64,000 bases of DNA from Adineta vaga (Eukaryota; Animalia; Rotifera): contig CP075497.1 of assembly GCA_021613535.1 (NCBI GenBank), positions 6,510,001-6,574,000 of the forward strand, in the 5' to 3' direction. Shown here one piece after another: positions 50,481-60,452 of this stretch. The notes beneath the pieces were generated by a model. That model was not told the origin of the DNA. It worked only from the letters and a program-made list of their open reading frames with translations, and did no database searches. Every line of letters begins with the position of its first letter. Position 1 is the first letter of the stretch. The position numbers were made by a program, and so were the translations under genes.

Positions 50481-52254
50481 CTATTTTTGAACAAATGTAA
50501 ATCCTTCTTTTCCTAAATGATCTAATAAAACTGTGCGTCCAAATGCAGCTCCTGGTGTTAAAACTCCACCTCTACAAAAGAAAGCATCGAATTGAAATCA
50601 ATAAACATATTCTCTTACTTCACTGGTAAATGGTCGTTCTCTTTAATTAACATCGTTGCACAAGCAACTAACATTTTCGATGTTCCAAGATATCCAGGAT
50701 CAGGTCCAGCAAATTCATGAATTAATTTCTGATTATTTTCTGTATGCGTTAAAAATGTCATTTTAAATGTTGTATGTTCACACTAGAAAGTATAAAAGAA
50801 AATTAAGAATATAAAAGAAAATTGTTTTTTTTTGCTGAGTTTACATCTTGTCGTGAAGGTCCTTCTTTAGTTACTAATCCATTGGAAAACAGACCGGGAA
50901 ACTAAATAAAAGAATTCAATTATGAAAGAGTAGGAGTTTGATATAATCAATACTTTGAGTAATAATTGAACACCGAATTGAAATTTTGCAAAAATAGAAA
51001 ATATTAAACCAAAAAAGACAAGTTTAATGGTTGAAATGAATGATGGCATTTGAAGATAAGGTTGAAAACGAATCTAAAAGAAAACATTTTCTATGCTTTA
51101 ATATTGAATGAAAAAGTTTTTCTTTACTGGTTTTTTCTCTAATTTTGTATAATTAAAATATTGTGTACGTTGAACAACAGATTTATCACTACCTGGAAAT
51201 GGTACTGCCCAAATAGGTTTTCCTTGAATATTTGTTTTAAAGATAGGTTTTCTAAGTCAAACTTTAAAAAAACATCAAATCTATTTTAATTCAATAATAC
51301 CGGTGAATTTTAAGTTTTGGATATGGTAATTTTTGTTGAAATAATTGTCGACGAAGATTTTTTAATTCATTTGCGTGAGAAAATCCATAAACAGCTGATT
51401 CCCATGTTGCATAGTGAATCAATCCACTCTGAAACAAAGAAAAGCAATCATTTAAATGCTCTTTTCATTTAAAATTTCTTATACGGTGATTGTTTCATAT
51501 TTCATTGTAAGGAAACTTTCAATCAATGAAATGTCTAAATAAGATTTAATGATTCAGTTAATTGTTACATTAAAATAATAAATACCAAGATTCTTTTGTT
51601 CACATTCTTGACGAATAGCTTCGACACCAGCATCAGCAACAAGTGAATCAAAACCACAACTACCAACTATAACAACTTCACGTTCAGCAGCTTGACTATC
51701 ATATCGAAGTTGCATTGTTTCAAGAAACTATAATATAAATATATTAAACTTCAATTATTGATTCTATCTTCTTCTTCTTTTTTACTTGTGGTTCACCACT
51801 AATATCAATATAATGTGTACGTGCTTCGAGACAAGCTTGAACTACTGGTTCACCATAATGTCGATACTAGAAATACTCATTTAGAAATCTATTAAACTCT
51901 TCTTCGATTACATACAGGTCCAACACAATTTATTAAAACTTTTGCTCGAGCACACATATTCACTAATGATTGTTGGTTGGTAATATTTGCGCTAATCGTA
52001 TCAATAGTTGAACTAAGATTTTCAATACCTAGAGAATGATATAGATAAGATAGTCTATTGAATGTTGGAAATTTCACTTTCACACCCGTAATATTTGATG
52101 CTTGTTGAAGACCTTGTTTTAATTTCTCAATTGTTCGTCCAGCAACACCCCATTTTAGACTTATTTGTTTTCCTTTTCTTGCCATTTCTTCGATGACATA
52201 CTGGCCAGTATAACCAGTTGCACCAAAAATTAGTATATCAAGTCGACTTGACAT
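50481..52254 (-). CDS. SCCPDH: Saccharopine dehydrogenase-like oxidoreductase
   Basis: LDILIFGATGYTG, WGVAGR, VLINCVGPYRHYGEPVV, YIDISGEP, GSCGFDS, GPDPGY, GGVLTPGAAF. Stop TAG at 50481. Confidence 0.92.
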
Positions 52255-52463
52255 CGAAATGTATCACTCGTTAGTAATTCAATCTAGAGTAGAATGTTGT
52301 TTTTAACAACATCAACATATTTACATGTAAATGACTAAGATAAGTTTATTTGAAATGCTCTTCGATCACAATTATCTGTTGGAATTAAATCATTCTTGAG
52401 AAAAGCTCGATTAAAATGAAACAGAGAAAAGTCTTTTGCTTGATGGTTGTCTCAAAGCATAAT

Positions 52464-53072
52464 TCATTTGAAATCAAGTAATTCAACATCGAAAATCAAT
52501 GTTGAATCGCCTGGAATTAATCCATCACCAAAACCTTCTTTACCTAATAAAAACATTCTTTGTTTTTTTTCATAATTTATTTATCTGAATATAATTTCTT
52601 ACCATAAGCATATTCCGGTGGACATGTAAATATTGCACGTTCACCTTTTGACATCTGAGCAACGCCTTCATCCCATCCCTATATTCACATATAGAATATT
52701 TTTACAATCAATTTCCTTATTCAATTATCTTACTCTTATAACTTCACTAGAAAAAGATAAAAATTCCAGCGAATTAAAATTATCAAAGCAATTCTAGTTG
52801 AAAATATTCACCCTTGGCCAAGTGTAAATTCAAATGGTTCATTACGATCACGTGAGGAATCAAATTTCTTTCCATTTCTTAATGTACCTATACATTCAAA
52901 CTTGAAATATTTCTTTTCTTATTTCTCTCTCACCAGTATAATGAACAGATACAAGTTGTCCATCTTTTGGCTTTTGACCTAATATTTCATAATTACAAAC
53001 AATGATGACAAAAGTAAAACTCAACGAACCATTTCCTTCTTTAATTGTTTCAACTTTAAATCCTGATGACAT
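52464..53072 (-). CDS. FKBP1A: FKBP12-type peptidyl-prolyl isomerase (110 aa; not in ORF track)
   Basis: Exons 53072-53030, 52978-52934, 52887-52812, 52746-52734, 52678-52603, 52543-52464 give ...[60 protein letters not shown]...[17 protein letters not shown]. Confidence 0.93.
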
Positions 53073-53458
53073 TTCTTGTTGAATAATAAGATCTATGTTC
53101 TACAAAAAAAAAGATGAAATTCGTCTATATCTTTTATTTATATATATATATATATGTATATACAAAGCACAAAAAGAAAGAAAAATAATAATAATAATAG
53201 CCAAGTATAGACGCTAAAAAAAGAAGTAGTAACAATAAACAGTAAAGTCCGTTGTTTAGTTAAGTTGAGCAATATGAAATCTATATACACGAGAACAGAA
53301 AAAAAAGAGAAAAGAGAAAACATGTAGCAAGAGAACAATGAGACAATTTTATAGCTAGAGTAAAGAACCGGTTTTTTTGTGCGATGGTGTACAATCCAGA
53401 TTAGAAATATTTTGACACAGAACTAAAAAAAGAAGACCACAAATTGAATTCGTTTTAT

Positions 53459-57388: not shown

Positions 57389-57645
57389 TGTTCTTGTTCT
57401 TTCGATGGATAAGAAAGACAAATCTAGAAAGAAATATTAATTGAATAATGTTAATGTTTAACTTCATTTTTCTGTATATGTATTTGTATATACAAAATGT
57501 TAATATGATAAATAAATGAATGAAATAAACAAATACAACACTAAAAACATACGACAGATACAAAGATTAAATGTGAAAATATCTGACAAAAGAATTCGTT
57601 TTCATTTTGATCAAAAAAAGAAAGAGATGATTCTTCTTTCCTCAT

Positions 57646-59405
57646 TTATTTACTAGACATACTACCAGGTGCTGGTAATTGTTGAAGAACATTATCGAGC
57701 CATTGCATTGGACCATTAAGATGTATTTCAACCCAACACGGCGTACTCATGATTGTACGTCGACTAGAAAAGGAAAAGAATCTTGAAGCAATAGGTATAA
57801 ACAAAAGATTTTACCGATATTCTTCACCCCATCCTTTTACAAAACTCATGCGAATAGCACAGATACGTGTAAGATTATATACAGCTTCATAACCATATTG
57901 AATAGTTTCACTTAATGTTTGAGCAAATTCGGTATTACTGAAGATTTTTAAATTACAACCTAAATAAAACGATAATATAATGATATTATGCTCGAATGAA
58001 CGTCTCAGATAGGAATTCTCATTATGAGTAGAGTGCTAATCGTTCTACGCGATTTTCTTTTGATCCTAACAAAAGCTCAACGCAGTTGAAGTAAAGAATT
58101 TCTTCTGTTTCATCTATCGAACAAAAAACAGGAACATACGTGGTGGAATTTTACAAACTGTAGCAGGATGCCATTGAAAACTTTGATTACAACTTGGACT
58201 TTGTACAAATATTGGTGTATCTGATAGACATTCTGCAAAGACTTCTCCACCGATATAATAAAGACGAACACCATTACCAATCATTCGTCGACAAGCTTCA
58301 CTCTCTGTAGTACGATTTACATTTGATAATGATCCAAGACAAAATCGATCTGATGCATTTGGATCACAAAATCCATCGATAACAAGTGAATTGAGGGATG
58401 CATGGAATATTTCACCAACACGTTGATTCAATTCATAATAGAGTATTGAACACCAAAATGGAGTTTCAGCATAAGCGATAGGTGCTGTTTGAACGCCTAA
58501 TAAAATCACCAAAAGAATTCTTTGTATTCGATAGAAGAAACTAATTTTTTAATCTATATTACCATTAAAATTCGTTATTGCTACTTGTTGTTGATTCATA
58601 GATGCTTGTGTTGGTGTCATTGCTTCATAATTATCCTGTACACTTGCAGGACTATTTACAGCAGTACGTTGTTGATCAGCTGGCGATATAGCAACTATTG
58701 AAAAGACAACCCATTTTCTTGCACCATTCTCTTAATATTACTTACAATCCATGGGAACAGTTGAATCAGGTTGTATTTGCATTCGTTCACTTGTTGTTGA
58801 ATCGAACACAGCACGGTCAGAAACAGGAACATAAACAGGTGGAATAACTAGGAAAAGAAAGAAAGAGCTTTCATTTCAAAGGTACAGAATCTTTGTTTGC
58901 TATTTACATGGCGCAATAACTCGTTCTGAATGATAAGGATTGACACAGATTTGATCTTTTTCATGTTGAAATGCATATACACATGTATCCGTTGGTCGTA
59001 ATTCTAAATGAGTATTCAAATCTGGCCAACGCCATATACGACAAAAAGCCACGATAGGTGTCACATCATTGAATGCTTTCCGAACTGTTTGAGATGGATT
59101 TGGTTCCACTAGTTTCTTTTGTGCATCTCTAAATATGTAAATAGAATCATCGAAAATAAACATAACAATCTTATTTACCGTGGAATAGTGACACAACGTG
59201 TTTGTGAATTTTGAGTATCTAATGCTGCTTGTAAATCATCAATCATCGATGTTCTTATTAGACGTTTAATTAACCCTTTAATGGCTTTTTCTGACCATTT
59301 ATCATCACTCGAATTCGGTTGAATATTTTTTCGATGTTGTAATAAATTTTTTAATGTTTGTGGATTAATTGTGAATGCAAATGGCAAATTAAAGAGATTG
59401 CTCAT
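57646..59405 (-). CDS. Receptor-regulated Smad-like, divergent (Smad B)
   Basis: MH1 ([32 protein letters not shown]) and MH2 ([44 protein letters not shown]). L3 loop EYRRRTIM. Ends GSMSSK-stop. Confidence 0.92.
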
Positions 59406-60452
59406 TATGAAATCTATCAAATTGAATGAAATATTATTTAAAACTAACACACAATAATCGATGAAAAAGAATAGAGAGAAACGATCGTCGGCATATTGAA
59501 ATCGTTTGTGATATTGACCTCTACTGACTTGTGTATACAGTAGGTCAATAAAAACATATCCTCAAAGAAGAAAAGATGTTTTTCTTCAGAAAAAAATTTC
59601 TTGAATTTAAAAAGACTAGTTAGAAAAAAAACAATTCTAATATTTACACTTTATTTATTTAGTAGATGGGAGTTCAGTTGAACATCTTAAAGAAGGATCT
59701 GATATTCAATTTTGATTGGACAGAAAAATCAATCAATAGGATTATTGATTACATTGAAGTTTTAAAGACTATTTGAGAAACAAATTATCGATTAGCAAAA
59801 GATATTGTATCTTTCGTATGGATGTGTAGGTATGCCATTGATTAAATTCTAATTTTTATGAACTTATTTCACTGTTTAATGCGAGTTTTTTGTTTTTCGA
59901 TAATCTATATCGATATATAATTTTCTTCATATCAATACATATCGAAGGTCTGTCTCTAAGCAGATAATACTTTCGATCCTCTTCACTATTCAGGATATAG
60001 GAAAAGATTTTCCACTGGAAATTCTAGCTACAACTTTTTCACATTTTTCTATAAAACTGACTTAACATAGGTTAAAACTTGAAATTGATTATCTTAAAAA
60101 TAGTTCCCCTTTTTGAGAAGATTTCTCATAGAATTCATTACTATAACTAAACGTCTATAATATATCGGTTATATACTATTCTTGTCTGACAGTTACGGAA
60201 GATTAAACTACGAATATACATAAAATTGAGAATAACAGAAAAAAATGTGTTTATAAACAAGCTGGTGTACTATGCTTGTGTTACGAAGAGAATGGAGAGA
60301 AAAGAATAAAATATTCTGTTGCACATATTGTCATACGAATGAGAAAATTTCATTGAATTTCTCATATTCAATTATGCAATAATTTATATTGTGTAAATAA
60401 AAAGAAATAGTTTGTAATATTTACTTTTAGATGTTGATTTTGTGTATGAAAT

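Follow-up and report, generated by a model that had tools for sequence, protein, structure and literature searches.

We analysed a stretch of 64,000 nucleotides of the bdelloid rotifer Adineta vaga (assembly GCA_021613535.1, contig CP075497.1, positions 6,510,001 to 6,574,000 of the forward strand; hereafter the window). It sits on contig 6 of the six-contig, 100.8-Mb assembly, in a region with a local GC content of approximately 30% and introns of 50–120 nt. Our subject is an array of six genes on the minus strand, arranged head to tail in the order SmadB, RPL36A, an orphan gene, SmadA, FKBP12, and SCCPDH. An earlier sequence-only reading had described this array as one polycistronic unit, resolved by spliced-leader (SL) trans-splicing, which would co-express two R-Smads with their receptor brake. 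We favour, at about an even chance of being right, a conserved cluster of individually SL-trans-spliced genes that in part forms a hybrid operon, most plausibly SmadA>FKBP12>SCCPDH.

Gene content of the array

Gene identities were determined by an exon-by-exon Pfam search, and lengths of coding sequences were obtained by summing exon lengths. Together with the exon translations, this search bore out the six genes, their identities and their order as first proposed. The following features are referred to throughout, from upstream to downstream of the array:

60453..60674, plus strand: first exon of a VPS13-like gene, divergent from SmadB; Pfam VPS13_N, E 6.9e-14
59416..60452, unstranded: VPS13/SmadB divergent intergenic region of about 1 kb, the presumed SmadB promoter
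57646..59415, minus strand: SmadB; acceptor AG 59415-14; 7 exons, 1323 nt; Pfam MH1 and MH2; Smad2/3-like
57389..57645, minus strand: SmadB>RPL36A gap; AATAAA overlapping the SmadB stop; conserved T-rich block; RPL36A acceptor AG 57425-24; likely RPL36A promoter region
57068..57388, minus strand: RPL36A (eL42); single exon; Pfam Ribosomal_L44, E 5e-33; very highly expressed
55392..56914, minus strand: orphan, bdelloid-restricted; acceptor AG 56914-13 with SL attached; upstream open reading frame (uORF) 56911-56900; 6 exons, 1116 nt
53459..55267, minus strand: SmadA; acceptor AG 55267-66; 6 exons, 1494 nt; Pfam MH1 and MH2; Smad2/3-like; ends SITSVS
53133..53138, minus strand: distal AATAAA of SmadA; FKBP12 acceptor 33 nt further on; conserved in A. 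ricciae
52464..53101, minus strand: FKBP12-like; acceptor AG 53101-00; 6 exons, 333 nt (110 aa); 13-nt microexon 52746-52734
52345..52350, minus strand: AATAAA of FKBP12; SCCPDH acceptor 61 nt further on; conserved in A. ricciae
50481..52285, minus strand: SCCPDH-like; acceptor AG 52285-84; 11 exons, 1239 nt; Pfam Sacchrp_dh_NADP

In array order, the summed exons amount to 440, 106, 371, 497, 110, and 412 codons, totals that are equal or near to those of separate-gene models in A. ricciae (orphan 351, SmadA 494, FKBP 110, and SCCPDH 412 aa). The stop-to-ATG gaps measure 257, 168, 144, 386, and 209 nt, so the short spacing held as well. A run of six co-oriented genes is by itself not rare in a genome of such size. 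The divergent VPS13 neighbour is also present in A. ricciae (L022) and in the more distant environmental bdelloid L039; the intergenic region shared with it is 59% identical to A. ricciae, near intron level. On the other side, a Zn_ribbon_3CxxC gene follows approximately 1.4 kb downstream of the array.

Acceptors and the spliced leader

An AG acceptor had been placed 9–35 nt before each of the six ATGs, and all six were confirmed. An acceptor matrix was built from 31 cis acceptors of the region and applied to all 5880 AGs in the window. By this matrix the acceptors of the orphan, FKBP12, SmadA, and RPL36A rank within the top 0.3%, 0.7%, 1.1%, and 1.7%, respectively, while those of SCCPDH (10%) and SmadB (28%) are weak; the latter two are conserved both in A. 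ricciae and in L039. The acceptor pattern exceeds chance. AT follows the AG directly in five of the six array acceptors (59414, 57424, 56913, 55266, and 52284) versus 3 of the 31 cis acceptors, which may reflect a preference of trans-splice sites. All six acceptors are conserved in A. ricciae, and all except that of FKBP12 are kept as TAG/AT in L039. The evidence supports the array AGs as real, conserved acceptors of the trans-splice type.

The published rotifer SL sequence (PMC3795323, Table 1) was found 42 times in the A. vaga genome, with T for the first G of the published sequence and with a GT donor behind every copy (e.g., L001:1501-1523). A genome search at up to one mismatch revealed this single SL sequence and no operon-specific, SL2-like leader.

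The SL RNA copies themselves show a peculiar arrangement. Many of the 42 are paired head to head in inverted orientation, with some 155 nt between the two starts (contigs 1, 2, 5, and 6; e.g., C1:2551160-2551336), and copies cluster on contig 5 at 9.88–9.93 Mb (C5:9884356-9925969) and at 10.91–10.93 Mb.

To the stretch 52100-58099 of the window we assigned assembled RNA contigs of four runs, which are taken as RNA because all four hold spliced contigs; the SmadB acceptor and the divergent region 59416..60452 lie outside this stretch. Record 14 of run X15 carries at its 5' end ACTTACCAAG joined at 56914, which together with the genomic AG makes up the last 12 bases of the SL, and continues to 55355 with all five orphan introns spliced out, which shows SL trans-splicing of the orphan at that acceptor. 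Record 4 of run X1 stops exactly on the A of the SmadA acceptor (55267) and has 5 further letters that do not align, an end that would fit an SL stub. At the acceptors of RPL36A, FKBP12, and SCCPDH the contigs either break or bridge. SL addition, proposed for all six acceptors, is thus seen for the orphan and is suggestive only for SmadA. As for a cis-spliced 5' untranslated region (UTR) of RPL36A, which had been named as the alternative, the gtatgt donor near 57553 exists but is not conserved, A. ricciae-type sequences reading gtgcgg.

RNA across the intercistronic gaps

Two junctions of the array are crossed by spliced RNA contigs in A. vaga. Record 10 of run X14 (1197 nt) contains two orphan exons, the 144-nt gap, and three SmadA exons, and contigs of X1, X14, and X15 lead from FKBP12 exons 5–6 through the 209-nt gap into SCCPDH, with introns removed on both sides in either case. 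All introns of SmadA and the orphan were seen as RNA joints, as were the last two introns of SmadB and the last intron of FKBP12. No contig covers the interval from the SmadB 3'UTR to RPL36A (57500-57663) in any of the four runs, and none bridges RPL36A and the orphan in X15. FKBP12 exons 1–4 are without contig depth, a kind of dip that can stem from filters.

Signals for 3'-end formation lie close to the next acceptor at two junctions. The AATAAA is located 33 nt upstream of it in SmadA>FKBP12 and 61 nt in FKBP12>SCCPDH; the latter signal, at 52350-52345, had been placed about 60 nt away, in good agreement with the measurement. SmadA contigs reach at least 210 nt past the stop, to 53251 or 53241, which fits use of the AATAAA at 53138-33. 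The orphan>SmadA gap has no AATAAA.

Contigs thus place RNA across two or more gaps of the A. vaga array, and across another three in relatives (see below). In A. vaga this was seen, at contig level, for orphan>SmadA and FKBP12>SCCPDH, and not for SmadB>RPL36A.

Several signals were rejected on inspection. Chimeric joints between SmadA and SmadB (57959>53848 and 53895>54805) do not represent trans- or mis-splicing; SmadB contigs were misplaced on short conserved bits of SmadA because the upstream exons of SmadB lay outside the examined stretch. Likewise, the loose end CCTGCTACA at 54831 is SmadB sequence rather than a mis-spliced product. The window shares exact stretches of 31–56 nt (57663-57693, 57210-57265, and 52633-52663) with its ohnologue on contig 3 (C3), and contigs break off at 57664 and 52662, right where the two 31-mers among these stretches lie. 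Such stretches lead to false transcript ends at fixed places in Logan contigs of A. vaga. A high-depth FKBP12 piece in X14 and X15 was not accepted as local high expression; it most likely derives from the ohnologue, because only the C3-shared stretch is covered and the local 3'UTR has low depth.

RPL36A and its likely promoter region

Transcription of all six genes from one promoter in the VPS13-divergent region, as the sequence-only reading had it, is contradicted by RPL36A. Its contigs have depths of 5310, 11310, and 1438 in X1, X14, and X15, compared with 65, 210, and 21 for SmadB, 83, 320, and 36 for the orphan, about 71, 190, and 19 for SmadA, and 85, 127, and 21 for SCCPDH. In all three runs RPL36A is thus 35–80 times deeper than these four genes, and from RPL36A to the orphan the depth falls 35–60-fold across the SL-bearing acceptor. 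The X15 contig of depth 1438 differs from the local copy at a single position over the 325 nt of 57058-57382, which excludes the ohnologue, 87% identical, as the source of the signal. Since such an excess cannot arise from a shared promoter upstream of SmadB, RPL36A needs a promoter of its own. The interval between the SmadB 3'UTR and RPL36A, which is without contig, likewise speaks against the single promoter.

The SmadB>RPL36A gap is 78% identical to A. ricciae, versus 53% for introns. In an alignment over both ohnologue types, the RPL36A acceptor and one upstream block are kept. This T-rich block at 57500-57530 (L010 ~2440-2470), about 100–130 nt before the RPL36A ATG, is retained in both types between unalignable flanks, and on grounds of sequence it is a candidate for the RPL36A core promoter.

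Conservation in relatives

The corresponding loci of other bdelloids, and the second copy in A. vaga, have the following content:

A. ricciae (L022): VPS13 (minus strand), then SmadB, RPL36A, orphan (351 aa), SmadA, FKBP, SCCPDH, Zn-ribbon; gaps 205/180/382/189
L039 (environmental, 274-kb contig): all six genes and divergent VPS13
A. vaga C3 ohnologue: SmadB', RPL36A', 1.5 kb without orphan, SmadA', FKBP12', Zn-ribbon; no SCCPDH
A. steineri: layout of the C3 type; Smad>FKBP gap 216 nt
Rotaria: SmadB-like MH2, SmadA-type gene, FKBP, Zn-ribbon; no orphan or SCCPDH; Smad>FKBP gap 236 nt
Didymodactylos carnosus: RPL36A, 2.8 kb, 943-aa orphan homologue, 2 kb, Smad
L024 (DNA, 75% identical): orphan, SmadA, an exon-1-like FKBP12 relic only, SCCPDH

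RPL36A was neither called nor matched at the Rotaria locus. Gene order is conserved among relatives: all six genes and VPS13 are linked in A. ricciae and L039, the core SmadB-RPL36A-SmadA-FKBP12 in the C3 copy and in A. steineri, and SmadB-SmadA-FKBP12 in Rotaria. However, the C3 copy has no orphan and no SCCPDH, L024 retains merely a relic of FKBP12, and the gaps of D. carnosus are kilobase-sized. Judged from these gene orders, the succession RPL36A-orphan-Smad is old, and so is the adjacency of Smad and FKBP12, which is kept in both ohnologues. The FKBP12 relic of L024 lies at 2440-2680, between SmadA and SCCPDH, and both flanking acceptors remain.

Identity to A. ricciae amounts to 83% in exons and 53% in introns of A. 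vaga, and to 78, 83, 73, 79, and 52% in the gaps, in array order. Four gaps hence hold constrained sequence, either UTRs or promoters, because they are 73–83% identical against 53% in introns; the FKBP12>SCCPDH gap at 52% is not constrained. Within the AT-rich orphan>SmadA gap, a GC-rich block around GTCCGCGAC (55345-55365) is conserved in A. ricciae (L022 ~9890-9910) and recognisable in L024 (~283-296). This block may serve as a promoter or in 3'-end formation.

RNA covers gaps in other bdelloids too, as seen in assembled contigs only. L035 (JGI 3300056981; 3491 nt) comprises SmadB', a 103-nt gap, RPL36A', a 307-nt gap, and SmadA'; it aligns exon by exon to the contig-3 copy with introns removed and acceptors unprocessed. 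L031 and L032, from two runs, are spliced contigs of RPL36A, 173 nt, and Smad, in which an AATAAA precedes the TAG/AT acceptor by about 25 nt. SL letters are absent at the 5' ends of the relatives' RNA contigs L025 and L031-L034. The contigs L036-L038 (P0002) have fragmented calls of open reading frames and are probably genomic DNA rather than RNA.

Encoded proteins

Both Smads carry MH1 and MH2 domains, and their best matches among solved structures are Smad2/3. In phmmer searches against PDB, the MH2 exon of SmadB scored 194 bits with Smad2/3 versus 160 with Smad1, and the A. ricciae orthologue of SmadA 302 versus 281 bits. The canonical phosphorylation motif of R-Smads is SSXS at the extreme C-terminus. 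SmadA of A. vaga terminates in SITSVS. Among 14 full-length bdelloid sequences compared, 12 have this end and the remaining two vary it to SVTSVS and SVNSVS; SITSVS reads S-V-S with T replacing the first S of SSXS. SmadB ends in SMSSK, which is conserved in A. ricciae and reads TMSSK in the C3 ohnologue; this is not a canonical terminal SXS.

The exon translations of FKBP12 read as FKBP, and the orthologues of A. ricciae, Rotaria, and A. steineri are annotated as FKBP_C with 110 aa. It is only for the vertebrate protein that binding of FKBP12 to the GS region of TGF-beta type I receptors is established. The 13-nt microexon of the A. vaga gene (52746-52734) codes for E-V-I-R and is conserved in A. 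ricciae (L022 ~12517-12529).

For the orphan, there was no Pfam match and no usable match in a feature search of the ESM Atlas. A HMMER search of its last exon against 1.84 billion representative proteins revealed bdelloid relatives only, besides one spurious low-complexity match in Toxocara. Because this exon finds only bdelloid proteins, the orphan is considered lineage-restricted; judged by sequence comparison it is nevertheless conserved across bdelloid families, with homologues at the equivalent place in A. ricciae, L039, and D. carnosus. A 3-codon uORF (56911-56900) begins 2 nt past the trans-splice site of the orphan and ends in a TAA that shares letters with the start codon of the gene (TAATG). 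A. vaga, A. ricciae (L022 8461-8472), and L039 (~7780-7791) agree in how long this uORF is and where it lies, but not in its codons.

Transcription of the array

In the reading that we favour, the array is a conserved cluster of individually trans-spliced genes and a hybrid operon in part. Each gene would possess an SL acceptor, mostly TAG/AT, a few nt before its ATG, such that each mature mRNA would start with the SL. At least two promoters would be in use, one for SmadB and one for RPL36A within the conserved 257-nt gap. Downstream of RPL36A, termination at gene ends would often fail, and the resulting precursors, spanning neighbouring genes, would be cut into single mRNAs by 3'-end cleavage and SL trans-splicing. 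The clearest junctions of this kind would be SmadA>FKBP12>SCCPDH, with their AATAAA signals 33 and 61 nt before the acceptor, possibly along with RPL36A>orphan>SmadA. SmadA>FKBP12>SCCPDH has the most operon-like anatomy of the array. We infer that the spanning RNA is a productive precursor, that the promoters are placed as described, and that the SL is used at the other four downstream genes.

Several points weigh against this reading. The SL was seen on one gene only, in one run, and the orphan>SmadA bridge in one of four runs. All RNA evidence consists of assembled contigs, which are able to merge overlapping transcripts, and none is a single molecule. Contig depth is a poor measure of expression; the excess of RPL36A is usable because of its size and its repetition in three runs. 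Where gaps are strongly conserved, independent promoters could lie within them. Finally, SmadA' on C3 is located behind 1.5 kb of non-coding DNA and the D. carnosus gaps are in the kilobase range; the same genes thus work without tight packing, since both loci have long spacers.

Alternatively, the six would be independent genes of a compact genome, with own promoters in the gaps or in upstream 3'UTRs. The SL would then merely trim short outrons, and cross-gap RNA would be read-through noise or the product of UTRs merged by the assembler. We treat this as a serious alternative, though a less likely one than the favoured reading. All gaps but one approach exons in conservation, a separate promoter for RPL36A is clear, SmadB>RPL36A is unbridged, as is RPL36A>orphan in X15, and in the ohnologue and D. 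carnosus these genes are expressed despite spacers of 1.5–2.8 kb. Moreover, a contig over two genes proves no single transcript. What independent genes explain poorly is the downstream end of the array: the FKBP12 and SCCPDH acceptors follow the preceding AATAAA so closely that almost no room is left for a promoter, and the FKBP12>SCCPDH gap is unconserved yet bridged in three runs. Multi-gene spliced contigs also recur in four independent data sets of relatives.

A bolder version of the hybrid operon can be formulated, which we regard as unlikely. It would see true SL-resolved bdelloid operons, in which the strong RPL36A promoter and leaky termination feed a low-level read-through that is processed to orphan, Smad2/3, FKBP12, and SCCPDH mRNAs. 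The linkage of Smad2/3 and FKBP12, which predates the bdelloid genome duplication and persists in both ohnologues, would be kept for co-dosing a TGF-beta/activin transducer with its receptor brake. In the reading favoured above, the Smad-FKBP12 pairing is an old linkage, and co-regulation of the two would be hypothetical.

The six-gene polycistronic operon of the sequence-only reading, transcribed from the VPS13-divergent promoter and selected to co-express two R-Smads with the FKBP12 brake, is very unlikely. It would account for the co-orientation of the genes, for 59416-60452 as the only roomy upstream region, for the conservation of the whole array with divergent VPS13 in A. ricciae and L039, for the adjacency of Smad and FKBP12 in both ohnologues and Rotaria, and for the similar depths of SmadB, orphan, SmadA, and SCCPDH within each run. 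A single co-expression unit is, however, contradicted by the depth of RPL36A relative to upstream SmadB and by the interval from the SmadB 3'UTR to RPL36A, which has no contig in four runs. In addition, the gene content is labile (orphan and SCCPDH missing from the ohnologue, FKBP12 a relic in L024), and the linkage looks like ordinary block synteny because the neighbouring Zn-ribbon gene is conserved too.

Cis-splicing of SmadB and RPL36A into one fusion mRNA is extremely unlikely: public A. ricciae models (6054-8266 in both L022 and L023) show one protein of 537/551 aa with MH1, MH2, and Ribosomal_L44, the A. vaga GT at 57665-64 spliced to the acceptor 57425-24 (57666 to 57423) would stay in frame, and SmadB contigs stop at 57664 in four runs, but this stop is explained by the exact 31-mer 57663-57693, also present in the C3 ohnologue, sequences of the C3 type do not conserve the GT, L035 keeps the stop codon of SmadB' and an unspliced gap, and the depths of SmadB and RPL36A differ. 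The A. ricciae fusion model is probably an annotation artefact.

Tight co-oriented packing alone thus overstates the size of an operon, because a highly expressed ribosomal gene lies inside the run. The functional story of Smads and FKBP12, in turn, draws only on inherited linkage.

Comparison with known operon systems

Hybrid operons of nematodes contain internal promoters. The A. vaga array resembles them in having an internal promoter for a highly expressed member, and it shares with SL operons of the C. elegans type the co-orientation of functionally unrelated genes and, at two junctions, a downstream acceptor close behind the poly(A) signal of the preceding gene (33 and 61 nt). It differs from nematode operons in that one SL and no SL2-like leader was found at up to one mismatch, in that three of the five gaps are longer or have no AATAAA, and in that a polycistronic precursor is suggested at contig level. 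From Ciona/Oikopleura-type junctions, which have no intercistronic spacer, those of the A. vaga array are distinguished by their spacers.

Chaetognaths are gnathiferan relatives of rotifers and hence offer a closer comparison. There, the operational definition of an operon required a spacing of genes below 250 bp and an SL on one or more of them, with a single class of leaders (PMC12460157). By this rule, RPL36A>orphan>SmadA (168 and 144 nt) and FKBP12>SCCPDH (209 nt) would count as operons. Signalling and developmental genes are depleted from chaetognath operons (PMC12460157); the A. vaga cluster, unlike these, holds two Smads.

Operons have been reported in no rotifer (PMC7986045), and a full-text literature search returned no report of a bdelloid operon. 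Multi-gene spliced contigs as found here also arise from overlapping UTRs or leaky termination, and in this respect the locus resembles merged or read-through transcripts produced by assembly. An SL exactly at a downstream acceptor and poly(A) signals right before acceptors are, in contrast, not expected from merging alone. By adding an SL junction, boundary-crossing RNA, and conservation in multiple bdelloid lineages, the locus supports the existence of operon-like units in A. vaga.

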